From: Macrostomum lignano
Taxonomy: Eukaryota
Assembly (NCBI GenBank): GCA_002269645.1
Contig: NIVC01002320.1
Span: forward strand, 120,354-184,353
Direction: 5' to 3'
DNA: 64,000 nucleotides
The position numbers and the translations under genes are program-made. Each line of letters begins with the position of its first letter. The stretch's first letter is position 1. Below the pieces are notes generated by a model. That model was not told the origin of the DNA and did no database searches. It worked only from the letters and a program-made list of their open reading frames with translations. Shown piece after piece: positions 5,449-64,000 of the stretch.

Positions 5449-7526
5449 CGACGTTTGCCTGCGGGACGTTTGCCAGCCGACATTTGCCAGCCGACGTTTA
5501 CCAGCCGACGTTTGCCTGCGGGACGTTTGCCAGCCGACATTTTCCAGCCGACGTTTACCAGCCGATGTTTGCCTGCCGGACGTTTGCCAGCCGACTTTTT
5601 ATTTTTATTAGTATTAGAGGCAGGGGGGTTGTGTGCACCCTGGCGCACTTTAAGCGACATAGGCACACAACCGGCGAAAGGCATTGCTGCCCATTCCGCC
5701 GACTCCCCTGAGCAGGCATACAAGCGCGCGGATACGTACGCAGGCACACACTCACACAGGAGTGTACAGCGGCCCTAACTTTATATTATCGTTAGACATG
5801 TACACTTCACTGCGCCTTGGGGGGTTGGCTCTCAAGGCCGCTAATTGCACGAGCAGAGCCAAGCCGGGATTCCAATTCAGCCCAAAATTAATGTGACTGC
5901 ACTTGGAATCGAGCCTGGGTTGCTGGCACACCAGAGCCTGCGCTACCGCTGGGCTACGGCCCCCCGCCAGCCGACGTTTGCCTGCGAGACGTTTGCCAGC
6001 CGACGTTTGCGAGCCGACGTTTGCCAGCCGACGTTTGCCAGCCGACGTTTGCCAGCCGACGTTTACAAGCCGAAGTTTGCCAGCCGACGTTTGCCTGCTG
6101 GAAGTTTGCCAGCAAAAATTTGCTAGCCGATATAAAGCCAGTCAGTGAAAAATTTGATACTGAAATATTCGCAGTTTAGCGGTTTGACAAAAACCGTTTT
6201 TACTCAAACTTTTTGACAGTTATTTGCATGTAATACAAGTTCGAAAGCAAAATCTATATAACTATGCAATTCATTAGTCTAACATCTAATATCTAGTTTA
6301 ACAACGATTTTCTTTGAATGTGAAAATATAGTTTACTTAATTTTTGACAATTGTGTATCGTTTTTTCCAGTTTGAGATGTTTGATTTTTTATGTGCGAAA
6401 GAAGACGCGCAGATTACAACGGGAATCTCCAGCGATTAAGTTATGAGGCAAACAAAAAGAGCTGCTGAGCGGTAATTCTGGCTCATATATTTCTCAGTTC
6501 ATTGGGAGATCCGAAAGTAAGCAAATTGATTCCAATGCTGTTGTATTACTACACAAGTAAGACAGGAAACCGCGATCTCAACGTACATGTGTAGACGAGT
6601 CGAATGCGGTACGTTTGTATAGCCAGACAAGCCGCCAGTAACAAGAACTAGTAGGATAGCAAGCGCTAGACACTTCGTATACAAAGCTTAGTCACGCCAA
6701 GGACTACTAAAGTAGAAGGACGCGCAGCACTCGAAATCTATGGAAAATGTTTTGAAGGCCATAGGGAGATAGGAAGTTTTCATCTTTTCAGCACAACAAT
6801 TGTTATTGCTTTCATACGAGGCAAACCCATTGTTCATCTTTTGATATGTTGTGCCAAAATCGTTGTTAAACTAGATATTAGACGTTAGACTAATGAATTG
6901 CATAGTTATATAGATTTTGCTTTCGAACTTGTATACATGCAAATAACCGTCAAAAATTTTGAGTAAAAACGGTTTTTGTCAAACCGCTAAACTGCGAATA
7001 TTTCAGTATCAAATTTTTCACTGACTGGCTTTATATTGGCTAGCAAATTTTAGCTGGCAAACTTCCAGCAGGCAAACGTCGGCTGACAAACTTCGGCTGG
7101 CAAACGTCCCGCAGGCAAACGTCCGGCAGGCAAACGTCGGCTGGCAAACTTCGGCTGGCAAACGTCCCGCAGGCAAACGTCCGGCAGGCAAACGTCGGCT
7201 GGCAAACTTCGGCTGGCAAACGTCCCGCAGGCAAACGTCCGGCAGGCAAACTTCGGCTGGCAAACGTCGGCTGGCAAATGTCGGCTGGCAAACGTCCCGC
7301 AGGCAAACGTCCGGCAGGCAAACTTCAGCTGGCAAACGTCCCGCAGGCAAACGTCGGCTGGCAAACGTCGGCTGGCAAACGTCGGCTGGCAAACGTCGGC
7401 TGGCAAACGTCGGCTGGCAAACGTCGGCTGGCAAACGTCGGCTGGCAAACGTCGGCTGGCAAACGTCGGCTGGCAAACGTCCCGCAGGCAAACGTCGGCT
7501 GGCAAACGTCCCGCAGGCAAACGTCG
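5449..7526. mobile_element. Foldback-type non-autonomous DNA element with long modular inverted arms
   Basis: Left arm 5449-6311 is the reverse complement of right arm 6856-7526. Each arm has an outer array of 14-bp gccgacgtttgcca units and an inner ~215-bp AT-rich unique segment. Spacer is 544 bp; cta flanks both ends (5446-5448, 7527-7529); no transposase ORF seen. Confidence 0.85.
5596..5965 (-). mobile_element. tRNA-derived SINE (family 1), full-length, inserted in the foldback left arm
   Basis: Minus strand begins gggggccgtagcccagcggtagcgc (A-box) ... ggctcgattcc (B-box) and ends in an A-rich tail. Flanked by gccagccgac direct repeats (5586-5595, 5966-5975). Homologous pieces at 22381 and 61803. 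Confidence 0.8.
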
Positions 7527-21688: not shown

Positions 21689-22380
21689 TGTCGGTAGGTC
21701 TTGTACGCGTCATTTATTGTGCGAGATACACTTGCGCAACAAAAAAAGATAGACAAAAATGAATAATTAAAGCTAAGAGAAGAGAATTAGGACACACGGG
21801 GACAAAAAAGAGGAACGCAAAGGTGTGCAGCGTGGGTCAATAGCGCAATAATTACATCAGTTAGTAATAGTAATTACAAGCGCAAACTCCCATAATAATA
21901 TGATTATATGTATAGCAGTAGTATCAATCAAATATAAACATTGCAAAGTTGACTAAGCGCTGTGCTTGACTATCAGAGAGCATTAAAATAATAAAATAAA
22001 CGCAGACTTGAGAAAATTTCGCCCCCCTCTAAAACGTGACCGACTTTAATGGGACATGTAAAATATAATTAGCTAAAAAAACTGAACAAACAATCAAATA
22101 TATCAATCAATTAACAGATAATGACAGCAAGAAAAAAGAGGAGGGTTGCGTAAACAAATTATCTTCTAAAAGAAAAAGGTGAAACAAAAATAGCTAATTT
22201 AAAAAATGTACTCAAACATATCTCAGTATCTCGCGTTTTAGATTTGATTTCAAATCGAGAAAAAATAAGAGTAAATTTTAAACACGATAAAAGCAAGGAC
22301 TACTGATAGTAAGCAGGCGCAACAATAAAGAGTTTTGGATTTTGTTTTCTGTAACTACAGGCTGTTTTTTCGCCCTTCCC

Positions 22381-22478
22381 CCAAGGCACAGTGAAGTGTA
22401 CAGGCCTAAAGATAAATAAAGTTAGGGCCGCTGTACTCTCCAGTGTGAGTGTCTGTACGTATGACTGCGTACGTATCC
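22381..22478 (+). mobile_element. Internal fragment of SINE family 1
   Basis: aaggcacagtgaagtgtacaggcctaaagataaataaagttagggccgctgtac matches the reverse complement of 5760-5820. Confidence 0.7.
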
Positions 22479-22952
22479 TAACTAAAAAACTACAATGAAA
22501 ACCAGTGCCAATATTGTTCTCAGCGTTGCGTCCGTGCCTTACTGCTGGTTGGGCCTTGGGATAAAAGCAGCACAGGATGATGGTCCTCAGAATCTCTTAA
22601 GAGATAAGCACAAATAGATTTTTGACAAACTATAAATTGAAATAGAATATACTATATAGCAAGCAGTAATATTATATCCATATTGAATAAAGTGGAGCGC
22701 ATGCTTCTGTATTTACAGGGTAATTATATCAAACTATATTTTTCCAGCTGGTTAAGTCAGACAACAGACAGACAGGTTTAGTTAACACAATGACTGTATT
22801 GGGGAGGCAGCCGTATTTTTATAGCAAAAAAAAACACTCTTGCCAAGCTGCTAAGCTATGCAGCTGTAGAGAAATGCGCGTGCATGATTAGCTTATATTA
22901 AATTATATAAGTTCGTTCAGGTGCTCATATTGCACTAGCAATAAAGGGAATG

Positions 22953-25900
22953 TCAGAGAGCCTTAAGCGACACGTAGCTCTGCAGCTGGTTGGGCAGCGG
23001 CAGCTTATTAACCTTGTGCTTCATAGAATCAGTGTGCCCCAGAGCCCGTTGGATCTCGTTGCGGCACAGCCGTTTCAAAGAGCGCACGTTGCACTCCTCC
23101 CTGTGCAGCCAGTCGGAGAAGTCCTGATCAGCGTAGATGATCTTGTCCGGTATGATCTGGTTCTCCAACAGCCAGCGGGTGAAGGCCTGCAGGTTAAGCG
23201 GGTCGCAGCCGTGCGACAGCAGCAGCTTGACCATGGGGATGTCCAGCTTGGGGAACTTCACGGCCATGTGCAACGGCGCCAAGCCGTCCTTGTCGCAGCG
23301 GTTCACCTGGGCGCCGTGCTTGATGAGCTTGTCGGCGATGGCCAGGTGGCCGTGCAGCACGGCGATGTACAGAGGAGTTTTGCCGTTGCGGTCGGCGGCG
23401 TTCACGTCGGAGCCGTGGCGCAGCAGCAGGTCGACAATGTCGGTGCGGCCGTGATAGGTGGCCACGTACAGCGGGGTCTTCTTGTGCGTGTCCGGCTGGT
23501 CAACGTCAGCCTCGGAGCGGAGCAGAGCCTGCACAATCTCCAGGTGGCCAAAGTAGGCAGCGATGTACATTGGCGATTTCAGCTCCTTGTTGGGCAGGTG
23601 AACATCGGCGCCCTTGGAGAGGAAATAATTGACAAGCTCGACATGGCCGCGGCTGGTTGCCAGGTACAGCGGCGACCGGCCGTACGAGTCCGTGCTATTG
23701 ATTGACGCGTTGCCCTACAGGTAGGCGGCAGGTAAGTATGCTCAAACTTTCATTAGGATTCCCTTAAAGACGAAGCGGCAATGCGCCTGGCCCAAGGACT
23801 ACTTAAGTAAAGGGAATGGAAACTACGGTTCTTGGAACATTATCAGGCAGGCTTTATCAAAAAAATACTATATGGAGATTGGATTTCATTTGGTCAGCAC
23901 AAAAATTGTCATTGCTTTTGATAGGAAGTAGACCCGATGTTTATTTCGTATGTCCTGCCTTTGTTATAGCTCGATTGATAGTCATAAAGCTTTTCGTTTA
24001 GAAAATTAAGATTATATGTTAGTTTTATTATAACTTTATTAACGGCTGACTTTGACATAGGTAACCCGTTGAAAACGCTAGAGAGTGATAGCAAACAACC
24101 CACTAGTCACTCGAACGACTCTTAATGTGGCTTTTTAACGACTCAAAAACGACTGTAATGCGACGGAGAGGTGACTGTTGAGTCACAAACGCATCACGCG
24201 AGAATCGTAAGAGTCGCGGAAAAAGTCATCCAAGAGTCTTTGTGTTAGCGCGTAACTTTCGAAATGACTCTATACATTTCGCAGACAATAAAACGCCCCA
24301 AATTGATTTTTTGGCGACTTGTTCTGGGACATCTTGGTCGTTTTGGAGTCGTCTAGAGTCATTTCTTTGCTACGTCGTATTCTACATGCGTTAACTCTGA
24401 AACGATTCTGGGGCGACGCAAGCGACTCTGGGACGCTTCTTCACCGTCTTCATCGGGTAATGGTTAGCACTGGCCATCTATAGATTGCGAATAGGGAGTG
24501 TCTATAAATAAACAAATCAATTCCTTGGCTGACACAGAGGGAGTCAAATTTTACCGCTAGGTAGCTAATAGCTACAAAGCCAGGCTCCACTGGATCGATG
24601 CAGTCAAACTGGCGCACCTCATAAGGCTGGAAAATCAATGTAATCCAATCTATAATACTTCTCTCTCACCTGTCCTAATAGGAGCTGAGTCATTGACAGG
24701 CAGCCAGTGTAGGCAGCGTGGTGCAGAGCAGTCATGCCCTGCTTGTCAGTCTTGCTGGCTGAGCTGCCGGCGGCCAGAAGCAGGGCTGCCAGGCCCACTC
24801 CGCTGGCGCCCAGCTCGGCGGCAATCATGAGCGGCGTCATGCCGATCTGGTCGGTGTCCTCCAGCCGCAACGACTCCGACTTCAGCAGGGCGCCAACTAC
24901 CGCCTCGCGTCGGTCCTTCACCGCTGAGGTGAGCGCCGTGTCGCCGCTCTCGCTTTTCAGGTTGACATTGACGCTGGGGAACTGAACCATCTCGGCGGCG
25001 ATCTGGGCGCTGGCCCGGTGCAGCGGGGCCAGGCCGTCGGTGTCCAGCAGGTTGGGATTGCAGTCGTTTTGCAGCAGGGCTCGGCAGGTGGCGCGGTACT
25101 TCTCAGAGGTCTGCGTGGCTATGAGGTGCAGCCCCGTTTGCAAGTGCTGGTTGCGCATGTTCACGTCCGCGTTGGACTTCACCTGGACGGATGGGGGTTG
25201 GGTGCTCAATAATCCTGTTGGTGGGGACTAAAGATCTGGGAGGGTGGGGACTCGATCTGGGATCTGAGAGGGGGTGGAGACAATCTAGGGATCTGGGAGG
25301 GACTCGATCTAGGGATCTAGGAGGGTGGGGATTCGATGTAGGGATCTAAGAGGGTTGGATACTTAATCTAGGGATCTGGGAGGGTTGGGGACTCAATCTA
25401 GGGATCTGGGAAGGTGGGGATTCGATGTAGGGACCTAAGAGGGTAGGAGACTAATATAAAGATCTGGGAGGGTTGGGGACTCAATCTAGGGATTTGGGAG
25501 GGTTGTAGACTCAATCTAGGGATTTGGGAGGGTTGGGGACTCAATCTAAGGATCCGGGAGGTTTGGAGACTTAATCTAGGGATCTGGGAGGGTGAGGATT
25601 CAATGTAGGGACCTAAGAGGGTAGAAGACTAATATAAAGATCTGGGAGGGTTGGGGACTCATTCTAAGGATTTGGGAGGGTTGTAGACTCAATCTAGGGA
25701 TCTGGGACGGTGGGGACTCAATTTAAGGATCTGGGAGGGTTGGGGACTCAATCTAGGGATCTTGGAAGGTGGGGATTCGATGTAGGGACCTAAGAGGGTA
25801 GGAGACTAATATAAAGATCTGGGAGGGTTGGGGACTCAATCTAGGGATTTGGGAGGGTTGTAGACTCAATCTAGGGATCTGGGAGGGTGGGGATTCAATG

Positions 25901-28192: not shown

Positions 28193-29732
28193 CTGCCTGG
28201 CAACAGCCGCATGTGCTGCAGAATGCAATTTCGAGTAGCAGACATTCGCAACAAGTTTTTGGCTTTTATAAGCAGATTAAATCATATATATATTGGATTC
28301 ATATATATTTTAAAGATATTTATAGGTAGGAAATACCTGACCCACTACAAAACGCCAGCTGTGTGAACTAGAGTTCAGCTTAATTGGCTATTTTATCACT
28401 GCAACTACCTTGAAAAGTAACACTAAGACTATTTTAACTGCATACTAACCATGACCAATCATTTTTAACTCAGCATTGGTAATGAACACTCTAATGCAAT
28501 AGGCTATCAACCTCATTACATGGAATATTCTTAACAAAATATTTACCCATATAAAATGCTAAACAAGGACCACTAGTATAACAGGATAGAAAACTCAAAG
28601 ATTGTTTAATTTTTGGAGGCCAATTTTCTAGAAAAAAATATTTTTTATCACAAAATCAATAATTGAATTTGAGATAAGACAGTGAAGATTATCATTCTTT
28701 TAATTTAGCATTGGATAACATGCTATTCTATTGTAGTTTAGAGTTGTGCATTTGAGTTGTATTTTAAAGATATTAATTTTTAAGCTAAACATAAGCCTAG
28801 ATTTTATCACAAATATAATTGATTCAAGAAGAAACAAAACAAGTTTAGCCTATGCCACCTATAAGTATTAATATAACTATTAAACAAGCATTCTAAGCCT
28901 GTTTTATGTTTAACATAAAAAGTATATTTTAAAATTTGTAACTTATTATAGAAGAAACAAGATAATATATAGCTAATAAAAAGAAATATCATATTGAAAA
29001 TGTTATAATTATATTATCCAAAGTAATTATCAAAAAGAAGCCATATTTGAATTTGGATATCATTATTTTCTAATAATTTAAAACATTTTAAATGATTAGT
29101 CACATAATCATATTATCTCAAACTATGCAATACAAGTCTAGCCATATAGTAGGTTTTAGTATAATAGATGTTTTTACTAGTAAAGATAGGGGCCTTAGCT
29201 TTAATTGATCATAATACATTAAAATCCTGTAAAAATTTCAAATTTCTAAAAAAGAATCTAGCATTTATTTGTATCATTAATAAAATTATTATAAAATAAG
29301 AATATTATAAAAATAAAAATAATTTATGGTATAAATATGTAGAAGGGCCTATGTTTATTCCTAGAAAATTAGTTTCCGCGAAATTAAATTCCCGCCAAAA
29401 TAACAAGTACCGTATGATTTGTTTTAATTTGTAAATTTGTTTTACTGAATAATATTTTGTTTTAATGATGCGAATAATTTGTTTTAGCTATTCATTTGTT
29501 TTAATGTTAGATATGTAAGCCAATGGAACAAGACTCTAACTAGTATAAATACAAGGCCAAAATAAAACGAAACCTCGACCTTTTTCGGGTTCCTAACTCA
29601 GTTAACAGGAAATTAAGATTTCTTGGTTCTTCTGAATTAGTCCTTTGAAGCAGTATTGCAGACTAAGTTACCGTGTTGGATAGCAAAGAGCGTTTTGCCA
29701 GTATAATGATAAGCAGGGATTGCCAGTAAAGA

Positions 29733-30876: not shown

Positions 30877-33800
30877 ATGTCGGCCACGACTGCCGGCTAC
30901 AAGATGTCTGAAAAGCAATATGCTAGCGGCAACTTCACAAGTGATGAAGTTCCGCATGAGATTCATGTGAAAATGAGCAAGAAAATTGCTCAGCTTACCA
31001 AGGTAAGGCAAGGGCTAGCTTTGAAAAATAACATTAGCTCAAGCATTGCGCTACTGTTAAAAATTCGTTTGCACCTGCGTCACTACAGTTCAATTCTGAT
31101 TGCAAGCCCATTTTCTGCTTTGAACCTTTCTAAACGCTAATAAGTATTGAACGGGTGTACAATCTAAAGCAACACGCGAATACTTAAGTTGTAGTCTTGT
31201 AGACTGTGCAATGCAGAATTATGTAGACACTACCATGAAGTATAAGATATGTGAACATAAACATTGCAACTCTAATTTATAACAGCAATTCAGCTCGTAA
31301 ATCGCTTCGCTTTACCAGAAATTTTAAATAATTCTTCCATTTTTACTTTTTGTTGCAAAACTTGATACAGAAAATATTGTTCGTCTTCAATATAATTTAT
31401 TAAACATTGAATAGATTCAAAATATTCAATACGCAAATTTTTTTGCTACTTTTAATCACAATTTAAAAAAATTATGCTGTTATTCTTATTTACCCAGCAG
31501 GGAATTTCAGCCCAAATCATCATAGATCAAGGCAAGATGCGATTTTTATTTAGCTCGTATCTTATCACAGAAGTAAAAAGTTCAATGCTGAAATCCTTCC
31601 TACAGTGTGCTTTTCATGATAATCAAATGTTTAAAGACGTCACAGAGTTCTCATCTAAAATTGCTTCTTGGCCTTGGCCTCTATTCTCACTAATCAATCG
31701 CACGTTGAGCATACATTTTCACTAATAAAACCGTTGGTATAATTCATATAATTAATAAGGACAATAACCGAAGGTTGATAATACATAAAACTTAAAGTAA
31801 ATTCAACATTTTTAAATTCCTGATCGAAGTATATGTAGTGAGACAGCACCGCAATCAAGTAAATAGTTATTTGAAGCTGGAAGAAACAGCTAACAAGCGT
31901 ATGACAAAAATGAACATAGTTTAAAAATATTATATGTGAATATTTTATTTAATTTCTTATAAACTATTTTTTACTTCTTCATTTATTTTAAACCATTGTT
32001 AACTAATTAAAAATCTAATATTTTTGTAAGATTCAATAATTTAGAAAAACCTGGATAGATATGAATATGCATGCAATAGATTAATAAGGCCATTCCAATA
32101 GTTCTAAAAGTGGATCAATGATGGGTATTTTCAAGTCAAACATCATTGCTCAATGTTTTATTTCTCCTAATCAGCAGAAGCCAATTTCGAATATCCTCAC
32201 TGCGCATATAAAATCAGCTGTAACAAATTATAAATCGCCATGAATAAATAATGGCATGCAAAACAACCAACTCTGGCACAAAGCATTGCTGTGCATTGCT
32301 GACTTGGGCACCCGATTGCCTCATTCAACTTCACCAGGTGATCTACGCACTCAACACGAAGAACGATGAGCACGAAGCTCTGGTAGACGCCCTCAAAAAA
32401 CAGCACGCGGCCGAGCTGGAGAAAGTCCTGGCCAGCAGCCGGGAGAAGCTGGCCCGTTGCCAGAGCCTCATCGGTCAGGACAGCGAGTACAGGCGGCGCA
32501 TCGGCCAACTGGAGGGCTCGCTGGCCGAGGCGCAAGAGCGGCAGGCGGCCAGTCAGCGCGAATTCGCCGACTTCAAAGTTCGAGCTGAGAGCCGCGAAAG
32601 AGAGCTGGCGCAGCAGCAGGCGCAAAAGGTTGGCTGGCCTGACTGAATGCCTGGCTTGAAATGCTTGTGAAGCCAGTTGGCTATGGATGTTGAGTTTCCC
32701 AAATCCTAGCTAAGAACTCAGGATTTATACAGCTGAGTATCTCGAAAAAATCAGGATGAAATCCGTTCATCCCATTTCATGATGGTGGGTGTTCACGATC
32801 GCGAAAATCAATGACGGAATTTAAGCTCCAGAACAACCATCGAACTCAGATGTCTCTGGTGAGCACACAATCCTGACACCACAAATCTGACACCATAATC
32901 CTGACACCACAAATCTGACAAAAAAATCCTGACACCACAATCCTGACACCACAAATCTGACACCATAATCCTGACACCACAAATCTGACACCATAATCCT
33001 GACACCACAAATCTGACACCATAATCCTGACACCACAAATCTGACACCACAATCCTGACACCACAAATCTGACACCATAATCCTGACACCACAAATCTGA
33101 CACCATAATCCTGACACCACAAATCTGACACCATAATCCTGACACTACAAATCTGACACCATAATCCTGACACCACAAATCTGACACCATAATCCTGACA
33201 CCACAAATCTGACAAAAAAATCCTGACACCACAATCCTGACACCACAAATCTGACACCATAATCCTGACACCACAAATCTGACACCATAATCCTGACACC
33301 ACAAATCTGACACCATAATCCTGACACCACAAATCTGACACCATAATCCTGACACCACAAATCTGACACCATAATCCTGACACCACAAATCTGACAAAAA
33401 AATCCTGACACCACAAACCTGACACCATAATCCTGACGCCATAAATCTGACAAAAAAATCCTGACACCACAAACCTGACACCATAATCCTGACGCCATAA
33501 TCCTGACGCCATAAATCTGACAAAAAAATCCTGACACCACAAATCTGACAAAAAAATCCTGACACCACAAACCTGACACCATAATCCTGACGCCATAAAT
33601 CTGACACCATAATCCTGACACTACAAATCTGACACCATAATCCTGACACCACAAATCTGACACCATAATCCTGACACCACAAATCTGACAAAACAATCCT
33701 GACACCACAAATCTGACACCATAATCCTGACACCACAAATCTGACACCATAATCCTGACACCACAAATCTGACACCATAATCCTGACACCACAAATCTGA

Positions 33801-36800
33801 CACCATAATCCTGACACCACAAATCTGACACCATAATCCTGACACCACAAATCTGACAAAACAATCCTGACACTACAAATCTGACACCATAATCCTGACA
33901 CCACAAATCTGACACCATAATCCTGACACCACAAATCTGACAAAACAATCCTGACACTACAAATCTGACACCATAATCCTGACACCACAAATCTGACACC
34001 ATAATCCTGACGCCATAAATCTGACACCATAATCCTGACACCACAAATCTGACACCATAATCCTGACACCACAAATCTGACACCATAATCCTGACAACAC
34101 AAACCTGACATCATAAACCTGAAACCAGAAATCTGACAACCGAAAAATCTGACACCATAAACCTGACACAAGAAATCTGACACCACAAACCTGACAATAA
34201 AATCCTGACACCACAAATCTGACACCATAAACCTGACAATAAAATCCTGACACCACAAATCTGACACCACAAACCTGACAATAAAATCCTGACACCACAA
34301 ATCTGACAATCACAAATGTGACACCACAAACCTGACACCAGAAACCTGACACGACAAAACAAAACCAAAAACCTGACACAACAAATCTGATAACCACAAA
34401 CCTGACAATCACAAACCTGACACCACAAACCTGACACCACAAACCTGACACCACAAACCTGACACCACAAACCTGACACCACAAACCTGACACCACAAAC
34501 CTGACACCACAAACCTGACACCACAAACCTGACACCACAAACCTGACACCACAAACCTGACACCACAAACCTGACACCACAAACCTGACACCACAAACCT
34601 GACACCACAAACCTGACACCACAAACCTGACAATCACAAACCTGACACCACAAACCTGATGCCACAAACCGGACACCACAAACCTGACACCACAAACCTG
34701 ACACCACAAATCTGACACCACAAACCTGATGCTACAAACCTGATGCTACAAACCTGACACCACAAACCTGACACCACAATCCTGACACCACAAATCTGGT
34801 ACCACAAACCTGACACCACAAACCTGACACCACAAACCTGACACCACAATCCTGACACCACAAATCTGGTACCACAAACCTGACACCACATACCTGACAC
34901 CACAAACCTGACACCACAATCCTGACACCACAAACCTGACACCACAAACCTGATGCCACCGAGTTCGAGAGTTTGAATGGAAAGAAAAGTTTTGGTCTTC
35001 ATTTTCCACATGCGTCACCATCATGGAACGCGTTGACGGAATAAAGTTCTGCGAACTCTGAAAAAATATTTTAAAAATTCTCAAAATGAATCTGAAAAAA
35101 ATTTGTGCATTTGCGAAACCCCAAGACTGTGAATTTTTTTCGTGTTAACCATTATGTGTCTTAAGCACCGCATTTAGTACCTTTGATTTCATTTACAACG
35201 TAACTCCGCTCAGGCGAAGGACATGACCAAACAGGTGGCGGAAATCCAGGAGGCCTACGACCGCGCAATCGAGAGATTCCAGGGCCTGCTGGGCGAGGCC
35301 AAGACCGCAAAACAGCGGGCCCTCGACGAACAGAAGGCTGCCTATGAGAAGAAACTCGATGAGGTGAACCGCAGTCAGAAAGACATTGAGGCCTCGCTGA
35401 ACGGTGCAACCCAGAAGGTGCACGAGAACTACAAGGCTGAGATTGACGGCCTGCGCACTCGTCTTGAGCAGGAGCAGGCAGGCCGCGGCAAGGACTCGCA
35501 GGACTACGAGGACAAACTGAAGAAACAGCAGCAGTTCCACCAGAAGGAGATCGAGGCGCTCAAATCGCAGCTGGAGTCCGGCAAAGCCGAGGAGCTGGAC
35601 CGGCTCAAGCGGCAGCACGACGAGCTGCGCAAGGAGCACCTGGCGCACCAGGCCGACGCTAGGAAGGAGCGCCAGGGCCTCATCGAGAAGCTGGCAAAGG
35701 CGGAGGACTTGGTCGAGCAGCTGCGCCAGGACCTCAACAATGTCGGACTGTCTGACTCGGCCAAGGACGCTGAGATTTCTCGCCTTTCAGCGGAGGTTCG
35801 TTTGAGTTTATTTGCATTTTTCTATCAATCCTAACCTTGGTTTCGATAATACTCGCCCCTAATCTTTGCACTTCCAGCTCAAGACATCGTCAGAAGAACT
35901 GAAATCGCAGCAAGAATCGGTGAGAAGTCTGCGCATCGAGCTGCAGACTGCAACAGAAAAGTGCGAGCAGCAGCTCAATGATATTGTGCAGAAATCTGGT
36001 GAGTCTTTGACTTTTTAACAAACACTTAAGCCTCCTTGGTCATAGAGAACAGGGCACTTTAATGAGAATTCTCTTCTCACCCGTAGAGTCCATCGGTGAG
36101 CTGCAGGCGGCGGTGCTTCAGCACGAGGGCACGATTAAGCGCCAAGCGGAGGAGCTGGCCCAGCTGCAGCGCCGATGGGAAGACCAGGAGCGGCAGCAGA
36201 GCGACAAAGGCCGCGAACAGGACGGGCTGCTGCGGCAGGCGGAGAAGCAGGCGCAGCGCTTGGAACAGCAGCTGCAACAGCTGCGCGAAGAGAAAATGCA
36301 AGCGGAACGGCAGGCAGAGGAGGAGAGGCAGCGGCTTGTAGCCGAAATGGACTCCAAGGAGCGGGCGCTCCTGCAGAAGCAGGACAAGGAAGCCAAGCAA
36401 GCCCTGAAAAAGTATCAGGACGAGCTGAAGAAGCAGAAAGCCGGCTTCGATTCCGAGATTGAACTGCTAAACAAAGAGAACTCTAGCAAGCTTGAGCTGA
36501 TGCAAAACGCTGCGGAGAAGGAGAAGAAGGAGGCTCAGAAGGAGCTTTCCCGGTTGAAGCGCGAGCTCGAGGCGCAACTGAAAGCGCGCGATGAAAAGCT
36601 GCGCGAGCTGGAACGCCAGCTGCGGGACAAGGAGTCCGGCCTTGGCAGCGTCTCTGAGACCATGGAGGCGCTGAAGGCGGAGAAAGCGCGGCTGCAGGCG
36701 GAGGCCGAAGAAGCGGTCGGTCGCGCCAAAGTTGAAGCGGCAGAGGCAGCGAGACTGCGGCAGGAGCTGGAGCGGCTGCGGTCGGTTTATGAGCAACGGC

Positions 36801-39378
36801 TCAAGGAGTCCAAGAAGGATCTGAATCAGAAAATGAACGAGCTCTCCGCCGACCTGGACAAGAAGTGGGCGGACACGCTGCGCCGTGAGACTGCCAAGCT
36901 GCGTCAGGAGTACGACATCCAGAGCAAGGCCGATAGCCAGGCCGGCCTTAAAGCGTTCAAAAAGTTGAAGGAAGAGGAGGCGGCCGAGGCGGCGCGGCAG
37001 GCGGAGGCGCGCGAGCGGAAGCTAAAAGAGGAAATCGAAGCACTGCGCGAGGCGGCTGCGGCAGCGGAGGCCGCCTGGCAGTCTCGACTGGACGAGGCTC
37101 GCGCCGAGGCGGAGAAGCAAGTGGCCGCGCTTCAGCGGGAGCTGCAGGCAGCGGAGAAGCGAGCCGCAGGCGAGTTGGAGAAACTCCGGCGTGAGAAAGA
37201 TGGCGAGCTGGCGGCAACGAAGGACAGCCTGAATCGGCAGCTGCTGGAGCTGCAGTCGGCCGGCAGCGGCCTGGCCGAAGAGACGAAGCGCAGGGCGCAG
37301 CTGGAGGCGCGAGCGGAGCTGGAGAAGCTTCGGCTGGAGCTTGAGCAAGCCAAGCAAAAAGCCCTGGACGAACTGAGCAGCCGGATGGAGCGCGAGAAGG
37401 AGCAGGTGCGAAGCGAGATGGTCGGCCGATTTGCGGCTGAGCTTGACGGGCACTCGTCCAGCTATCGGCAGCAGCTGGCTGAGGTGCAGGCGGCCCTCGA
37501 GCAGGCCAAGGCGGAGGCAGAGGCGCGGGAACGGGCGCTGGCCCAGCGCGCCGATTCGCTGCGCGGCGAGTGCGCGGAGCGGGAGCGCAAGATTGACAAA
37601 CTGCTGCGGGACGCGGAGGCGGCTCGAGAGGAGGCGACGGCGCTGCGGCGTAACCTGGAGGCGAAGAGTCGAGAGGCTGCAGAGGCCAAGTCCGAGTTTG
37701 ATGAAGGAATCAGGTGATTCTGGGGATAAATCAGTGATTAGATCTTTGTTTACTTGTGTCAAAACGTGAATACAATATTTCACACTTTTGTTCTCGCGCA
37801 GAAAACGGGAGGAAGAGATCACCGTGCATTTCGAGGCCCGCCTGCTGAAAGTCCGGGAGGAGGCGGCTTCTGAGAAGCAGCGAGTCATCACAGAGTTCTC
37901 AAAGGCGCAGGAGCTGCTAAAGATGAAGATTTTGGACTATAAGCAGCGCTTGGAGGACAGCGAGGACCGGCTGCGAAAGCGGGACCCCAGGCCCGAAGAT
38001 GTGGAGACTATTCAGGGCCTCCGGGCGCGGCTCAGCGAGCGCGAAGCCGAGGTGGCCAAGCTGGTGGTGAGCTTTCGAGGAAATCCTTAACTAACGGGAC
38101 AGAAATTTGCTTTCAAATTTGTACACGTGATGTCATTGAAAGACTTTGAAAGAAAGAAAGAAATGTAAATATCGACCATCCCAGAAGATAGTGGTAATAA
38201 GCGGCTTGAATTGTCTTAACTAAAAGACTTTAAATACTACTGTCAATGAGTAGACTGCAAACTCGTTCGCATTTATGGAAAAGTATGTTTGAATGTCCTT
38301 CTTTCACTTTCCCCGTCACTGCAGGAGGACATGCGGTTCTATAAGAACGAGTTGATCAACAGGGAGACCAACTACAACAAGGTGTTTAATAGTACAAATG
38401 GGCCGCATGTTGGACTCGTGAATCCACTGGCTGCCAAGGTTTGTCACTGAGTTGCGTATTCACACTAGCTTACTGAGGAGCTTAGGTACAGACACCAGAC
38501 TAATGAGAAGCTTAGGTACAGACACCAGACTACTAAGAAGCTTAGGTACAGACACCAGACTACTGAGGAGCTTAGGTACAGACACCAGACTACTGAGAAG
38601 CTTAGGTACGGACACCAGACTACTGAGTGACTTAGGTACGGACACCAGACTACTGAGAAGCTTAGGTACAGACACCAGACTACTGAGGAGCTTAGGTACA
38701 GACACCAGACTACTGAGTGGCTTAGGTAAATACACCAGACTACTGAGGAGCTTATAGGTACGAACACCAGACTACTGAGTGGCTTAGGTACAGACACCAG
38801 ACTACTGAGGAGCTTAGGTACAGACACCAGACTACTGAGTGGCTTAGGTACAGACACCAGACTACTGAGAAGCTCAGGTACGGACACCAGACTACTGAGT
38901 GGCTTAGGTAAAGACACCAGACTACTGAGGAGCTTAGGTACGGACACCAGACTACTGAGTGGCTTAGGTACAGACACCAGACTACTGAGGAGCTTAGGTA
39001 CGGACACCAGACTACTGAGTGGCTTAGGTACAGACACCAGACTACTAAGGAGCTTAGGTACAGACACCAGACTATTGAGGAGCTTAGGTACAGACACTAG
39101 CTTACTTCGTGGCTTAGGTACAGACACCAGACTACTGAGGAGCTTAGGTACGGACACCATCCTGCACCCGATCTCACTCCATATTGCAGCAGAAGAAGCG
39201 CAACTCAGTGTCGGATTCTCCCAGCCAGTCGGCCGCCAGCTCCACCGGCTCTCTGAAGGGCAAGGGCCGCCTGGCGCCGCTGCCCGGTTCGCCGATGCAC
39301 GACGAGCCGTTGACGCCGTCGAAGCCGCTGCCGCCGGCCTCCGTGCTGGCTTCCGGGTCTAGCAAGAAGTTCTTGTAG
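30877..39378 (+). CDS. FAM184A: FAM184A/B-like coiled-coil protein, 8 exons, ~1104 aa
   Basis: Exons 30877-31002, 32338-32628, 35214-35795, 35878-35998, 36087-37713, 37802-38066, 38325-38438, 39190-39378 (3315 nt, phases consistent). Family motifs HVKMSKKIAQLTK|VIYALNTKNDEHE and FYKNELINRETNYNKVFN; C-terminal LAPLPGSPMHD...SKPLP. Confidence 0.93.
32868..34958. repeat. 14-15-bp minisatellite in FAM184 intron 2
   Basis: Alternating units tctgacaccataat / cctgacaccacaaa, drifting to acctgacaccacaa toward the 3-prime end. Confidence 0.97.
38462..39158. repeat. 30-bp minisatellite filling FAM184 intron 7
   Basis: Unit cttaggtacagacaccagactactgaggag, ~23 copies. Confidence 0.96.
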
Positions 39379-39909
39379 CCAATCATCACGCTGTAGCTAA
39401 AAATATCCTTTAGAAACTTTCGTTGACTGACTTCGAGTGCAGGGTGCAAAACCAGTTGAAAACTACTCCAATTTCAATGGCGTATTTTCATGTGCTGGAC
39501 AAAATTCTTCAGAATCTTCTCGACTGATCGAGCGCGCTTTGATTGGTCAGTTGTTGGCTTTGCTTTCTAGTGCATGTGTACTTAACTGTGAACTTTATGA
39601 TCGGCTTTTCTTGTAGTACAACACTGTTTATTGTGAATAATGCTTATTTTACATTGACTACTTCGAAATACTTAATACACATATGCAAACTCAGAATTAT
39701 AGATCTGATAATTTTATTCATTAGCCTAAAGCGCTGAGACTCTTTCTGAGCTTTGTTCATGCTGTCAATGTCTCAGGTAGGCAACTTTTAGTTCGATAGT
39801 TCAACACATTTAAAGTGAATGCGTGAGAGGCGAGAGCCTAATGCAACCTTTGTTATCCTGCTCGTTTATCATATCAACCTAGTGAGAATATTTAATTCAA
39901 ATGAATAAA

Positions 39910-41345
39910 ATAACCGCTGGAGCTGTGGTCCTGCACAGGACGCCGCCTTCGCGAAGTGGCAGGCTCTCTGTTGTCGTCCGATCCAGTTTAAGCACATTTG
40001 GACTCTACAAAGAATCTGATTCTGGAGTGCGACGCCTCACCATACTGCCTGGGTTCAACCGCATGGTGCATCGCGCTGGTGCTTCTCTGTTGGGAGCCGA
40101 CGCCCTAAGCCGCCTCAGTTTCAACGCCCATATAGCTTGTTATGCTGCTGGGTTACCTGGACGATGGACCCGGGACAGCAGTCCAAGTGAAAGCCTTGAC
40201 CCGGCGGGATCCTGTGCGTTCTCGAGCGTTGTATTTTACAAAAAGTGTCACAGTCAGCGTCACGTCAGTTGTAGCTCAAGCGGTCAAGCGGTGCATCCGA
40301 AATGGCCTACGCAGCGAGTCACGGACCTCAGAATCAGCACTTAGCACTCATCAAATAACTGGTCGAAGACTCAGCAGCATCCTTATCCTTGGAGTCCATC
40401 GGGCGCTGTCAGCGACTATAGGGACGACTCAGCGGTGGTCACCCCGTTACTGAGGACCTCTAAGGACGTAACCCACATGTCGTCGCACTACCCGGTCGTT
40501 ACCATCGAATCCGCAGTGGTAGGATGCAGGCCAGCAACACCAAATACTCTAGCCGGCTTCATTCAAACCGTCGGCCCAAAAGTCTCTGGCCGGGACCGTG
40601 TCGCCAGGCTTGTACGTCCGGAATCGGACCTCGCTGTCGTGTTGCTCCTTCTGCTGGCTCTGCTTGCTTGCTTAGGTCAGGACGAGCTGTGTTCAGTAGT
40701 GTTCTTAGCTTACGTCTGATGGGGAGCTCGCAGGAAGAAACACCGGTAGTCGTATGCGGTGTGGCACGATAAGTCGATAACTCAGCAAAAACCGTGTAAC
40801 CTCCTCCAAAGATCTGTCACGCTGCTTTTCCCGAGACCGCTTTAGCGTCTGGGCAGCTCTGGACGGCCAGACCATTAAACGCTGAATAATGGATGCCACC
40901 CGGGCGTGCTGGATACCGTTCTTACGCAGGAATTCTGACATCTATTCGAGCCTGTTATCCAACACAATAATGTCTGGGAAACAATGGGTCGCAAAAACTT
41001 GAAACTTCTGGGTAGTGGCTGACGAAGTTGCAAAAGCAACCACACGCACGTCTAAACATTTGGAATTGGCGTCGACCACCACCACTACCGGCATCTTGCC
41101 AGCTGCCGCTTCAGCGTAGTCATGTGCAATCGCGGTCTATCTGGTCACGGCCAGGGAAGCATCGGCGAAGGTATTGGCGCCGGTACTCTTTGGCAAGGCA
41201 ATCAATCTCATCGTCCATGTCAGGCCACCAGAAGTAGCCCAGGGCCAACGATTTCATGCGCGACGCTCCTGAATGGCACTGGTGGATCACTTGGAGCAAC
41301 ACAGCCCGAGCTGCAACTGGGATGACTCAGGCCAGCCAGTTTTTG
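39910..41345. mobile_element. Degenerate Gypsy/Ty3 LTR-retrotransposon pol fragment (RNase H end on +, integrase on -)
   Basis: Plus strand: VHRAGASLLGADALSRL and TAVQVKALTRRDP. Minus strand: LLQVIHQCHSGASRMKSLALGYFWWPDMDDEI (H2C2 region), VVVDANSK, IIVLDN, EFLRKNGIQH, TRFLLSYR. Multiple frameshifts. Confidence 0.85.
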
Positions 41346-41426
41346 TGACGGAATAAACTGTTTTTGTGGTTTTAGTTATAGTTTTGTCCGGACGTTTAAA
41401 AAAGTCTTTCATTTTGGTTGGTGCAT

Positions 41427-41463
41427 CAAGGACTACTTAACGAAGTAACTTCAGTGGTCCTTG
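41427..41463. mobile_element. 37-bp inverted-repeat mini-element / putative P-like excision footprint with 8-bp TSD
   Basis: tggtgcat[caaggactact...agtggtccttg]tggtgcat. Confidence 0.75.
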
Positions 41464-42049
41464 TGGTGCATTCAGTTGCTTGATTGTCGCATCATTTTTC
41501 TTATTTGTCCAATATTTTGTTACAATATTGTTCGTCACTATAGTTGTAGGATCTCTACCAACAGATATACTGCAAAGTATTCTCACTTATGACATTTTCA
41601 TATCCTTTACGCAATTCTGAAAGTTTTTGGTGCTCCAAGATTTGATCTTCATCGGGCAAGGATGTGGTAGCGTGGCCTTAGTGCGATGTCTACATGTACA
41701 ATGTAGGTAAGAAATGTTTAACCAAAGTTCAAATTTTACGCAGCCTGCTACTACAGGGATGAATACAAAAATGTACGCAAGAGATGACAGTGTTGAGCAT
41801 GTCAGACTCAGAAGAGACCATTTTCGAGTACTACGCGTGTACATAGTACAATTACAAAAATTACTGACTAAACGGTACATACAGTGCTTAAACTTTTCCC
41901 TTTGCAATCAGCTTGTCCTGACTTCCTTTTTAGTCAGTGCAACACTTTGTGAATAATATTTCCCTTTTATCGACTAGCGACACGTACTAATATAAATACA
42001 ACACATCTGCTAGCTCGGACTTATAGATCGAATGATGTTATCCTTAGTC

Positions 42050-42590
42050 TAAAACTTTGAGACTTTCTGAGCTTTAGCCCATGCTGCTCCGTATATTGAT
42101 TTGGGCGAATTTCTCAGGTGGCACATTGGGGAATCAATCCGACTTTGGGGGGGGGGGATTTGTTTGGCAAGCCATTCCCGTTCTGTGCGAGTGGTTGAAG
42201 ACTCCCCTATTGGTCGCAGAGGCATTATGGATTCGCTGCGGGTCAGCGAACCCCCGGTCAGGACCAGGATGCGACCTGGCCTAAAGAGTGTCACTGCTTA
42301 GGATTTGCGTTATGCAGCGCATTCCCAGGCCTTCTCAGTTTCCGTGTAACGCTGAAGCGCATTGCGAGCGTCTGCTCGGTAAGTCAGTAAAGCGATATTG
42401 CTATGGCTGAATTCCATGTGCATTTAACTTGTATCGCACTCATTTTTCCACCTAAAGAGGGGTTCATATTACCGCGAGTACCTCTGCCGGTCGTCCAAGA
42501 TTGCTCAAATTTGATCAATCTTGGACCCGCAACAGTTCGAATTTTAAAGTACAGCTCTACAGTATGTAAGCAGAGTTTCAAGTACATTTT
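42050..42590 (-). mobile_element. Possible decayed Penelope-like GIY-YIG endonuclease fragment
   Basis: Minus strand reads AIQVKC...Y*LTEQTLAMRFS...NALH, resembling the VYxIxC...YIGxTxxxLxxRFxEH...SAL pattern; interrupted by stops. Confidence 0.4.
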
Positions 42591-42663
42591 AGTATTTATT
42601 TAGCTCTATACTTGTAAAGTGTCTCAAGTCCCTCACCAATACGATTGGCATGAGTAGATCAAC

Positions 42664-42682
42664 CAAGGACCACTAGTCCTTG
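42664..42682. mobile_element. 19-bp inverted-repeat mini-element / putative P-like excision footprint with 8-bp TSD
   Basis: agatcaac[caaggaccactagtccttg]agatcaac. Confidence 0.75.
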
Positions 42683-43338
42683 AGATCAACGTGCAGAGCA
42701 GGCCCAATCAGCCTGACTTATTTAACAAAAAATGAATTGGCTCAAGAAGTATGCTGCTTCTCCAGAGACGATGTTGTCGCCATCCTTTCATCCCCTCTGT
42801 TGCATCTTCTTTTTGAGAAATTTCTTTGCGCCCTGGGCTGATGCAGCTTAGAAAATACTGTGCGGATTTTTTGGCAGGTTGAAATCTACGAGTATTTTCT
42901 GGTGTACTCAACGGGAAATAGCAGACAGTGCAGCCTCCCAGAGCAGCAGGTGGTTACTCATTCTATTGTCTTGGCATGAGTGCCGGCTTGAGCTCTCTGA
43001 CCTTGAGCTCTAAGTTGAGCAGGACTTTTGCAGTAGCGCCCATCTGCTCACGACTTTTTAGGAAACTCTTCATTGCCTGAGCTCTCATTGTTTGGCGTGA
43101 AGTTGAGTGACAGACAACAGCAAGCAGACTTTGACAGTCCAGAACTGACATATTCTCGACTGTAGCTTCTTCTAGCTAACACTACCAAACTGCATTTTTC
43201 ATTGGCTTAAAACATGCTTATATTTTACAAGACACGGCAATACTCTTTACACTGTAGATTTCACACCTGCCGATAAATTTGGTTCAGGATGCTAGATCAT
43301 ATGGCGTACGGTAATGCACAGATTCATGAATTCATGAT

Positions 43339-51217: not shown

Positions 51218-51522
51218 TTATTATTATTATCACTATTACACCTGCCCTAATGGCCAGATGTGCAACCGACAGCTCAGCCGCAGCTATTGCGCGGCGCATT
51301 GATGAAGGCCGCGTACGGCTGTTCAGTCCAAGAACTGGGGGGTCGCCACACACCCTCAATTATCCCAGCTAATGCTGGCAACCATTTTACAGCTGGGTGA
51401 ACTGAAGCAATGCAGAGTTAAGTGTCTTGCTCAAGAACGCAAATTGTTCCAGTGGGATCGAGAATCGAACCCCCGACCTTTAAGTCATGAGTCTGACGCT
51501 CTAAACACTGGGCTACAGCCTC
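51218..51522 (-). mobile_element. tRNA(Met-like)-derived SINE with CORE-like central domain (family 2)
   Basis: Minus strand head gtagcccagtgtttagagcgtcagactcatgacttaaaggtcgggggttcgatt. Central cttgagcaagacacttaactct...cagttcacccagctgtaaaatgg resembles the MIR CORE. (ata)n tail; second copy at 63608. Confidence 0.8.
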
Positions 51523-51922
51523 TTCTATTGTCTCAGAAGAATTCAACGGATCCTGATTGACCTAATAACACTTGCTAACTACGAATCGATCTGAACTCAT
51601 GGGGCGGGCGGAATTCCTAGCTAAACAGAGCCTTGAATGACTCAAGTGAGTTCAGTCAAGCCGATATAGATTCAAACCGCAGATTCTGTTATGATGAGAG
51701 CGGCCTCTGGAGCATACATACAGTCCGCTGGTGAATACTGCCAGTTCAAATTGATACTGTGTATTCTGAATATTAAGTGGGAAGCTCCGATTAATTGTAG
51801 CGCAGGCTGATAAGCTAATTAATTAATTGGCTTGGCCAACACGAGCCATATTTGCCTGGCGGCCGCATTGCTTTTCGGTGAATAGGACAGAAGCTTATTG
51901 CCTTCTCTGCCAGTTTGACCTA

Positions 51923-58671: not shown

Positions 58672-61160
58672 TTCTTAATTGAGCGCTTGACAATTACGAC
58701 CTACCTATTGACAATATTTATTTAGCTACTCCAAGCCGATGTTGAGCCACGAAGCTCTCTAGGATCTCTCAGAATCTGCTGTGCGCTCTTGAGTATCTCC
58801 CTTTTCTGGCACACCTGGACAGGAGAGACTCTTCTATCTATTGGTGACAAAGTTTAGCAAACACTATCGGATAAATTTTGCACGTTACCGAGACCCAGTG
58901 AGCTCCGCTAGTTGACAGTTTCCGGAGTGCAAGTGTTGACTCCATTGGGGCTCAGGTAGAAGCGGAACAGTCGCAAAGGCACTCCAAGCTTTAGCAAAAT
59001 GGTCGCTGCCTATGTAGGTCCTGAGGTCTCAACTAATTATTTGTCTGGAGAAGATTGCCAGCCATTGTTTTATCTCGATTGAGAGCCTTCACCGACAATT
59101 GATTTACAGGATCTAACAAATATCAGGATGCTTAGGTACGAGAAAGCATAGTTATAAACCGTTAAGCCAGGTCCCTAGTAAAAACATTTAGTCCGAGACG
59201 GACCCATTAGTAGGCATAAGAGCCTTGCAGTACAAGGATAGCCTAGCTTGGCACGGAATTTTCCTCAATCGTGGGTCCAGACATCTGTCTAGCTTTGGAA
59301 TGCATTGGGGAAGACAAAGGGCCAGTATGCGCCGCATTCCTTGGGTTTATTAGGCTTGTGTGCTCTTTACAATGTCAGGGGGAAAATTTGGAATGCGGTA
59401 TTAGTTACTCGTATTTGCCGGTCAAGTTTTGAAAATTGCTTGTCAGATCACCTGCCGCGACTCCAGCTCGCCGCCCGGGAGACAAAAGTTGCCGATTAGT
59501 CCAAAGAGGAGCTTGAAGAAGTGCCCCGGCGCGGGGCTGGGTCGCACCGCTAGCTGATATTGATAGCGGGGCTGAAAGCGCACAGGGCCAGTTGCTTATC
59601 TAATGTTGCCTTCCATTCCGAGAAGAAAATGGAAATGTAATGGCTGACAAGATATGATGCGCTAAATGATCAGCAGCTGTTTTCCGGCTCTCCCCCTCCT
59701 CCTTCAGTATTTTATTGGACCACAGGGCGCTTCTGACGCCCTAAACTACATTTAGTTATGCAGCAGAAAAGTACAAACATGCCGACTCCCGCCATTCTTT
59801 AAGTAGTAACAACCCAGCCTTGCCTTCTGGTTCCGTGACATTTTATATCATATTGCTTCTTTCTGCTCCTAATGTGACGCTATACGTACTCGTCCATTTT
59901 TTATGCATGCTAAATTTTTCATTCTCTTGCTTTTGAATTTCAAATGCCCTATTGCTGACTCGACTACTCATAGTAGGCACATGGACAACTATAGTAGTAT
60001 GACGCTATTCTCTTGAGACCGGCTTTTTGCAGAAAAATAGTCGAAACAGTAGTGAGATAGAAGGTATTCCATTTTTGCGTACTACTTACGAAAAGTCCAC
60101 TTTAGTTGTCCATGAGTTAGGCCAGTCTACTGAACTGATAATCACCAACCAATTTCTGTATCCTAGTGGTATACTGGTGTACTTCAGTCAATATTTTTAT
60201 CAGCTAATGCCTTGCCAGGACCGCAGATTCGGTTGATTTTGAATCTGAGAGAAACACAGCTTTAACTTTAACTCTAGCTATTATTATTATTATCTAAATT
60301 TTATTTATGGTCCAATTTCTAATAGGAGTTGAGCATCTATGTACAGATAAGTTTCTGCGCTAAACTCTTGCAATGATTTTTGTATAATTTACAGCAAAAG
60401 TAAACGGACGATGCACTCCGTTTTCTTAGAAAAGAGCCGGATTTTCTGAAAAAATCTGATTTTAGTTTGTCTATGATGAAAACTCATTCAGCTAGCGTTG
60501 AACTGGCGATACGACAACTATTCGTTGCTCACCGGAATCCAGCTCATTTCTAAGAAATTCGAGTCTTCAATTGTTCATGAGCTCTAAAAAAAAATTGACG
60601 CTAATACTAATTTGACTACCAGATTTTAATTTGAATGTCATATTCTATTTAGACAAAATAAAAGACACATTGTCTTACTAGAATGTCCTACTAGAAGTAG
60701 TGCGCTAGTGACGCTCACCCACACCCACCACGTGTTGACTAGAAATGTCTGACTCCAATGCAGACAAGTAATTTTTTTAAACTCATTCCCGTAGGCGAAC
60801 TCATTTAAAAATGTGCGCTAGAATAGAGACGATTGAGCAAGCCGGGCACAGCGGAGAGCATTGCGCTGTCTGTCTAGAGGGAGGCGGGCTGAGAAAGTGT
60901 GGGGTAGCCAGGTAGGCAGGGAATGGCACTACAATGCCGACACCCCGTCCCGACTCACCAGCTCGCTCTGTATCCATGGCCCCCCTCTCTCCCTGCTCAA
61001 ACCGTTGCTGGCGTTGCAAGCGAAAATAGAGAGAGAGATAGCAGGCAAGCCCAGAGCCCATACGAAGAGTACTTGAAGCTTGAGCCTACCGTCATCTGTT
61101 GAGACACCGGAGCATTCGAATAGTTTGAGCAGCAGTCGAGCTCAATAGTGGCATCGGAGC

Positions 61161-63607: not shown

Positions 63608-63899
63608 TTTTTATTAAGTTATGGTACTTACGGGCAGATTTGCAATCGACGACTCAGCCGCAGCTTTTGCGAGGCCATATGAAGGTGCGTACGGTCTGTT
63701 CAGTCCAAGGACTGGGGGTCGCACACGCACCTCAATTACCCCAGCTAATGCTGGCACCTATTTTACAGCTGGGTGAACTGAAGCAATGCAGAGTTAAGTG
63801 TCTTGCTCAAGGACACAAATTGTTCCAGTGGGATCGCGAATCGAGCCCCCGACCTTCAAGTCGTGAGTCCGACGCTCTAGCCACTAGAATGCAACCCCC
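63608..63899 (-). mobile_element. Second copy of the CORE-like SINE (family 2)
   Basis: Highly similar to 51255-51515 over ~250 bp (ccagctaatgctggca...ttttacagctgggtgaactgaagcaatgcagagttaagtgtcttgctcaag). Confidence 0.8.
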
Positions 63900-64000
63900 T
63901 CAGATGTAGAATGGTAAGATTGGTAAGATGGTACTAAGTAATAGGCTAATACGAGAGTAAGTAGCTAACTACGCTCTCTACTTTTTGATGTACTCAGGTA

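Follow-up and report, generated by a model that had tools for sequence, protein, structure and literature searches.

In this analysis, we asked how a 19-bp hairpin with transposon-like ends came to stand between two exact copies of an 8-bp sequence in the genome of the flatworm Macrostomum lignano. The hairpin lies in a 64-kb stretch at the end of contig NIVC01002320.1 (assembly GCA_002269645.1), which was analysed as a whole and is referred to here as the window. The original prediction had described an insert with a 7-bp inverted terminus and a perfect 8-bp target-site duplication (TSD), and the sequence at 42656-42690 reads exactly so. The insert CAAGGACCACTAGTCCTTG (42664-42682) is bounded by AGATCAAC both on its left (42656-42663) and on its right (42683-42690), and the repeat is exactly 8 bp and cannot be extended, given that the bases next to it do not agree (t against g on the left, c against g on the right). 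Within the insert, the perfect inverted terminus CAAGGAC/GTCCTTG encloses a centre of 5 nt.

Two short inserts between exact duplications

The whole window was scanned, in an unbiased manner, for any direct repeat of an 8-mer around any insert of 10-60 bp with a perfect 7-bp terminal inverted repeat. The scan returned two sites, 42656-42690 and 41419-41471, against a mean of 0.003 sites per window in 300 first-order Markov simulations, one of which contained a single site and none of which contained two. The claim that the flanking repeat is unlikely to have arisen by chance is therefore borne out, and chance as the origin of the inserts is effectively refuted. When the scan was repeated for duplication lengths of 5-10 outside tandem arrays, no further case of 7-10 bp was found in the window.

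The second site lies 1.2 kb from the first and has the same terminal 7-mer. Here, TGGTGCAT occurs at 41419-41426 and again, without a mismatch, at 41464-41471, and the 37-bp insert between the two copies, CAAGGACTACTTAACGAAGTAACTTCAGTGGTCCTTG (41427-41463), carries the same family of termini on both sides. Its left end (E1) begins with CAAGGACTACTTAA and its right end (E2), read as the reverse complement, begins with CAAGGACCACTGAAGTTACTT. The 19-mer is exactly the first 11 nt of E2 followed by the reverse complement of the first 8 nt of E1; read in this way, as 11+8, it would be composed of the same end pair as the 37-mer in the opposite orientation. Divisions of the 19-mer as 11+8 with a 1-nt overlap, as 12+7, and as 14+7 overlapping at GT are equally good, and the last of these joins the first 14 nt of the type of end found at 28564 (described below) to GTCCTTG through a GT microhomology. 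The 37-mer can likewise be divided as 16+21, as 18+19, or as 14 and 16 nt separated by 7 nt of filler, in which case the filler GAAGT repeats the adjoining ACTTC in inverted orientation. Since each insert can be divided in several ways, the junctions are not uniquely assignable, and annealing at an ACT/AGT microhomology, as originally put forward for the 19-mer, is a possible junction but only one among these splits.

Whichever split is chosen, both short inserts consist of transposon-end sequence only, between intact duplications, and no retained piece exceeds ~21 nt. The retained lengths range from 5 to 21 nt per end, with the two ends fused head to head, and these figures come from two inserts in the M. 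lignano sequence examined, whose left/right split is ambiguous. Both inserts thus have the makeup of an excision footprint, that is, two intact TSDs around two termini, give or take a few nucleotides. Each is present as a single copy in 64 + 43.7 kb of M. lignano sequence, and not as the many near-identical copies that characterize a miniature inverted-repeat element (MITE).

Related copies in the window and in metagenomes

With one mismatch allowed, the terminus CAAGGACYACT is found seven times in the window, against 1.3 occurrences expected, at 6698, 22294, 23793, 28564, 41427, 41463 (minus strand) and 42664. As in class II elements, terminal inverted repeats (TIRs) are therefore common to copies at several loci, and TSDs accompany them, perfect over 8 bp at 42656/42683 and 41419/41464 and present with an offset of 1 bp on both sides of a longer copy. 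Two tRNA-SINE-like repeat copies (~51306-51557 and ~63700-63906, with translations containing ..CLAQ(E/G)(R/H)KLFQWDRES..) also lie in the window, and chance matches to CAAGGAC at 63706 and 63808 are explained by the second of them.

The longer copy is a MITE-like, non-coding element of 265 bp (22294-22558; 22286-22567 with its flanks), recognized by its family ends and its 8-bp duplication. It is flanked by GATAAAAG at 22286-22293 and 22560-22567, with one extra G at 22559. Its left end is CAAGGACTACTGATAGTAAGCAGG and its right end, as the reverse complement, is CAAGGCCCAACCAGCAGTAAGGCA; read along the strand, the element opens with CAAGGACTACTGATAGTAAG and closes with CTTACTGCTGGTTGGGCCTTG. 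Together with the second TSD-flanked copy 1.2 kb away, this element supports the earlier view that the 19-bp insert is derived from a transposon. That view had been staked on the existence of another TSD-flanked copy or a longer element, and the 37-bp and 265-bp copies supply both.

Other members of the family retain one recognizable end. A fragment on the plus strand at 6698-6837, with the left end CAAGGACTACTAAAGTAG, is homologous over ~150 bp to a plus-strand fragment at 23793-23944, which carries the terminus and lies in an intron of an ankyrin/SOCS-box gene; an additional left-end-like sequence occurs at 6642, 56 bp upstream of the 6698 fragment. A third left end, CAAGGACCACTAGTATAAC, is found on the plus strand at 28564-28590, and its first 14 nt are identical to those of the 19-mer. 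The left ends at 6698, 23793 and 28564 are similar beyond the 11-mer. A search for right ends or matching TSDs of these three copies, by matching 8-mers and a position weight matrix, returned none. An exact ATGCTAAA at 30536 was considered as a partner duplication and rejected, as nothing terminus-like precedes it and its occurrence is at chance level. A related family is represented by a 135-bp element at 59980-60114, with termini CATGGACAACTAWAGT (also read as CATGGACAACTA) and a degenerate flanking repeat, AGTAGGCA on one side and AGTTAGGC on the other. Both the 135-bp and the 265-bp copies fit the description of a MITE (short, non-coding, with TIR and TSD). In both, pairing is confined to the terminal 12-25 nt, so that neither is a long palindrome.

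No transposase-like open reading frame (ORF) was found among the stop-free segments of the window, and a Pfam search of the ORFs in the AT-rich region downstream of 28564 returned no match. The sole Pfam match in the search for transposases was the Integrase_H2C2 domain of a neighbouring retroelement fragment. With neither an autonomous element nor a transposase found in the window, the chemistry of cleavage proposed below is read from the scars themselves. In a further 43.7 kb of M. lignano sequence, from two duplicated loci of an ENaC paralogue on two contigs, the terminus CAAGGACYACT is absent, and the window is thus locally enriched for the family.

The same termini were sought in metagenomes with the pattern CAAGGACYACT-N(0-30)-AGTRGTCCTTG, and the 52 contigs recovered represent 36 distinct loci, of which 35 had flanks that could be used. 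Perfect 7-bp TSDs (AATTATC, CCTAGAG, CCTCGAC, AGTAGAC, CGCTGTC, GCCTGTG and CCTGAGC) flank the palindrome at 7 of these 35 loci, a 7-bp TSD with one mismatch is present at another four, and one further locus has an 8-bp TSD with a single mismatch. By chance, ~0.002 loci would be expected, and none of 22 shifted controls matched. Some of the loci are plain long palindromes on GC-rich contigs. The TSD-bearing contigs are eukaryote-like, being almost devoid of ORFs, and some contigs carry animal-type genes, namely for a CUB-domain protein and for a syntaxin/SNARE protein whose transcript contains the insert in its 3' UTR. The occurrence of 11-bp termini with 7-8 bp duplications in unrelated metagenomic animal sequences suggests that a family, or several families, with unusually conserved ends is widespread.

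One metagenomic family, found at five loci, has the same arms at each, CAAGGACTACTAGATTACTTA on one side and its complement on the other, which match perfectly for 17-21 nt. Its inserts of 39, 40, 43, 43 and 45 bp differ only at the centre, as is expected of independent joins of tails of fixed length. The search pattern admits inserts of up to 52 bp and hence places no upper limit on arm length, except in this 39-45 bp family. At the syntaxin locus, the centre of the insert holds an inverted copy of its own TSD (GATAATT versus AATTATC), suggestive of filler copied from the flank. This syntaxin-like animal transcript was recovered in four metagenomic or metatranscriptomic samples (L004, 109-142; L034, 2145-2176; L043, 1029-1061; L052, 227-260), and its 3' UTR insert, with the TSD AATTATC, varies from 32 to 34 bp across samples. 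A 2.4-kb contig (L038) contains two 40-bp inserts (1077-1116 and 1856-1895) 779 bp apart, with identical flanks and the TSD GCCTGTG, and this insert sits within a tandemly repeated unit.

Origin of the inserts and relation to known transposons

Perfect 8-bp duplications bounded by family termini indicate that an element of the CAAGGACYACT family was once integrated at each of the two sites. We consider it probable that both short inserts are donor-site scars of an excised cut-and-paste transposon with TIRs CAAGGACYACT and an 8-bp TSD, left behind by a long staggered cut (~17-22 nt) and end joining. In this model, the transposase would cut the non-transferred strand ~17-22 nt inside the inverted repeat, as P transposase does at 17 nt, and cutting within the TIR would leave single-stranded tails of transposon-end sequence on the donor flanks. 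End joining, using little microhomology or none and occasionally adding templated filler, would then unite these tails, with both duplications left intact on either side. The 37-bp scar would represent a near full-length join and the 19-bp scar a trimmed one. The position of the two scars, 1.2 kb apart in a stretch rich in copies, would suggest local re-insertion of the same or of sibling elements, and that both can be derived from one parent end pair would fit the nearby re-insertion known for P elements. A P-like stagger followed by end joining would explain why the duplications are intact, why the inserts contain end sequence only, why arm length is bounded and why variation is restricted to the centre. 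Judged from sequence, the scar lengths (5-21 nt per end, and arms of 17-21 nt in metagenomes) are consistent with a long staggered cut.

This model draws on what is known of P elements. PMC7776569 and PMC10983969 describe 8-bp TSDs and a cut in one strand 17 nt inside each inverted repeat, which leaves 17-nt non-complementary 3' tails on the donor flanks. An induced P excision junction in Drosophila reads acccagacCATGATGAAATAACATA-TGT-TATGTTATTTCATCATGacccagac, or, with its flanks, acccagac-CATGATGAAATAACATA-TGT-TATGTTATTTCATCATG-acccagac (PMC2895639), and other products include joins at microhomologies of 1-8 nt, recurrent identical junctions and flank-templated insertions (PMC2895639). P elements also re-insert preferentially nearby (PMC7776569). 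Drosophila P footprints therefore have the same order of parts as the inserts described here, namely end sequence of up to ~17 nt from the left and up to ~17 nt from the right, 0-9 nt apart, between two copies of the TSD (PMC2895639, PMC7776569), and they share with them two intact 8-bp duplications, short or no microhomology, occasional templated filler, a recurring junction and, presumably, nearby re-insertion. The excision scar suggested by the original prediction accordingly agrees in architecture with published P excision junctions (PMC2895639), although the junction at which the ends were joined is not unique. The two systems differ in that their termini are unrelated (CAAGGACYACT here, CATGATGAAATAACATA in P) and that the retained pieces, at ~19-21 nt, would imply a slightly longer stagger. 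The flatworm scars are, moreover, natural and fixed, whereas the P events were induced, and no THAP/P-type transposase is linked to the flatworm scars. The two flatworm scars are a new example of an already known type of relic. In this reading, they are without function of their own, and the 19-bp hairpin represents a neutral relic within intergenic DNA that is rich in repeats.

Assignment to a superfamily depends on termini, TSD and the form of the scars. hAT elements have 8-bp TSDs, termini of the form YARNG and a target preference of nTnnnnAn, and on cleavage the flanking DNA forms hairpins and the element is lost in its entirety. Their transposases carry a BED finger and a hAT dimerisation domain, whereas P transposases combine a THAP DNA-binding domain with an RNase-H-like catalytic domain and a GTP-binding insertion. 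The P superfamily is reportedly characterized, in Repbase and by Yuan and Wessler in 2011, by CANRG termini and TSDs of 7-8 bp, with which the CAAGG termini, the 8-bp TSDs in M. lignano and the 7-bp TSDs at seven metagenomic loci agree. CAAGG termini and an 8-bp TSD appear to fit hAT and P equally well; with the form of the scars taken into account, the best reading is that of a putative P-like family. Literature searches for the terminus sequences and for CANRG/YARNG returned only primers or unrelated papers, and the literature found on M. lignano repeats does not cover DNA transposons. Like hAT MITEs and abortive-repair derivatives, the family has an 8-bp TSD, YARNG-type termini, short non-autonomous copies (135 and 265 bp) and an apparent tendency to hop locally. 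It differs from them in that hAT footprints normally show altered TSD bases, whereas 5-21 nt of both TIRs are kept here. With MITEs in general, it shares TIR and TSD, the lack of coding capacity and a location in or near genes (intron, 3' UTR), but 19 and 37 bp fall far short of the 50-800 bp usual for MITEs, one copy of each variant is present in the sequence examined, and variation is central, as in repair junctions. The zebrafish Pdre2/THAP9 system, a metazoan family from outside the insects, offers a further likeness, in that its TIRs are short (13 bp), its TSDs measure 8 bp and many of its copies have lost internal sequence (PMC10983969); its termini differ (CATACCTGTCAAC), and TIR-TIR scars are not described in the passages cited (PMC10983969).

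A long stagger is not the only route to such a product. Given that most P excision products recovered in Drosophila arise by synthesis-dependent strand annealing (SDSA) combined with end joining (PMC2895639), short synthesis tracts could yield the same structure without one. In such a case, an element of any superfamily, for example hAT, would have been excised, synthesis from the sister chromatid would have copied ~5-21 nt of each end, and the nascent strands would have been end-joined. We regard this abortive gap repair as possible but doubtful. That it corresponds to the commonest outcome of P excision in flies (PMC2895639) is in its favour, as is the resemblance of the 135-bp and 265-bp copies to ordinary deletion derivatives. 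It would, however, demand that synthesis stopped after a very short tract on four independent occasions at the two sites in the window, and after 17-21 nt on ten occasions at five metagenomic loci, whereas repair tracts are normally far longer and variable. As to a hAT element in particular, CAAGG and the 8-bp TSD agree with the hAT consensus, and an A occupies position 7 in all three window TSDs (AGATCAAC, TGGTGCAT and GATAAAAG), which is half of the nTnnnnAn preference; a T at position 2 occurs in none of the three, and the 7-bp TSDs of the metagenomic relatives would be unusual for hAT. The original prediction had also allowed for an ultra-minimal mobile unit. On this account, TIR-only palindromes of 19-50 bp would be mobilized in trans by the family transposase, each making its own TSD, and nearly identical 43-bp units with different TSDs at two metagenomic loci, similar units of 48-52 bp at several loci in another metagenomic family, and TSDs that are intact at every copy could be taken to support it. 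The account is nevertheless unlikely. The M. lignano inserts are unequal (19 versus 37 bp) and neither has a second copy in 64 + 43.7 kb, differences in the metagenomic family are confined to the junction and not spread along the arms, and one insert has filler that looks templated from its own flank, which is impossible for a pre-formed unit. Recurrent identical junctions are also typical of the joining of identical tails, as in the 14 isolates of one P junction (PMC2895639), and 19 bp is too short for subterminal transposase-binding sites. It is correspondingly improbable that palindromes of 19-50 bp consisting of TIRs alone can be transposed, with 7-8 bp TSDs, by a cross-phylum transposase family that recognizes little beyond the terminal 11 nt CAAGGACYACT.

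Loss of the interior without any transposase, whether by replication slippage, by processing of a hairpin or cruciform, or by an internal break with resection down to protein-protected termini, seems very improbable. The products do form hairpins, and Staveley et al. are said to have proposed in 1995 that an inverted-repeat-binding protein protects P termini in flies. Yet the junctions have no direct repeats that could drive slippage, and trimming from a break at the centre of a palindrome was rejected, as the longer copies, which pair only over their terminal 12-25 nt, are not long palindromes and would provide no substrate for it. Finally, a chance structure, or a functional hairpin such as a terminator or protein-binding site that is flanked by a repeat through accident, can be given next to no credence. 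Both hairpins fold better than shuffled sequences (z about -4), but their stems are short and weak, at -5.6 kcal/mol for the 19-mer and -8.4 kcal/mol for the 37-mer as DNA. The window holds two sites with a common terminus where 0.003 were expected, and TSDs also accompany other copies of the family. Searches of the window and of 15 metagenomic contigs for Rfam families and tRNAs returned no match, and a functional RNA or terminator was rejected.

If the preferred reading, excision by a long-stagger cut and end joining, is correct, the geometry with which the transposase cuts is preserved in these natural, fixed TIR-TIR scars. A genome-wide histogram of scar lengths would then give the stagger of an uncharacterised transposase (~17-22 nt predicted) without biochemistry, and a P-like family would be flagged in M. 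lignano, a flatworm used for transgenesis. Because such remnants are so short, annotation pipelines will miss them. Were palindromes of 19-50 bp mobile after all, they would be the smallest mobile DNA elements known in animals.

Genomic surroundings

The window contains many minisatellites, and its ORFs are fragmentary. An intact ENaC-type ORF at 56.8-58.7 kb is 100 % identical to M. lignano BOX15_Mlig004551g1. A second locus for an empty-site comparison was sought, and no record was found for the 551-aa coiled-coil ORF, the ENaC ORF, ten small ORFs adjoining the scars or the FAM184-like protein; the one ENaC locus that this comparison recovered proved to be the window itself. A 615-aa ENaC paralogue is present as the same protein on NIVC01003967.1 and NIVC01003173.1, in agreement with a duplicated M. 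lignano genome.

A FAM184-like coiled-coil gene on the plus strand, with exons at about 31.0-38.1 kb (30990-38090), is located 3.3-4.6 kb upstream of the scars. The N-terminus of its protein, KMSKKIAQLTK followed by VIYALNTKNDEHE, is a 100 % match to a 144-aa M. lignano UniRef entry, and one of its introns contains a 2-kb minisatellite of 14/28-bp units (32866-34953). The scars adjoin a decayed Ty3-type integrase fragment (Integrase_H2C2, 40560-41326, minus strand), which is flanked by a direct repeat of 77 % identity (39677-39764 and 42001-42086) that may represent the remnants of long terminal repeats. The 37-bp scar falls within the interval bounded by this repeat (39677-42086) and the 19-bp scar outside it. 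That the scars lie inside a repeat with other copies in the window was considered and rejected, as this 77 % repeat was the only one found.

Several other repeat structures were observed. A perfect 11-bp inverted repeat, GTCCAAGATTG and CAATCTTGGAC with a 12-nt spacer, lies at 42495-42527, 130 bp upstream of the 19-bp scar; it is without a flanking duplication and is unrelated to the CAAGGACYACT termini. In the intron of the ankyrin/SOCS-box gene, the segment 24100-24440 is rich in short GACTC/GAGTC motifs, which resemble the subterminal repeats of some other DNA transposon. A large inverted structure spans 5449-7526, with arms at 6068-6311 and 6856-7098 that are 97 % identical in inverted orientation and inverted arrays of a 14-bp minisatellite outside them, and its 544-bp spacer holds the left ends at 6642 and 6698.
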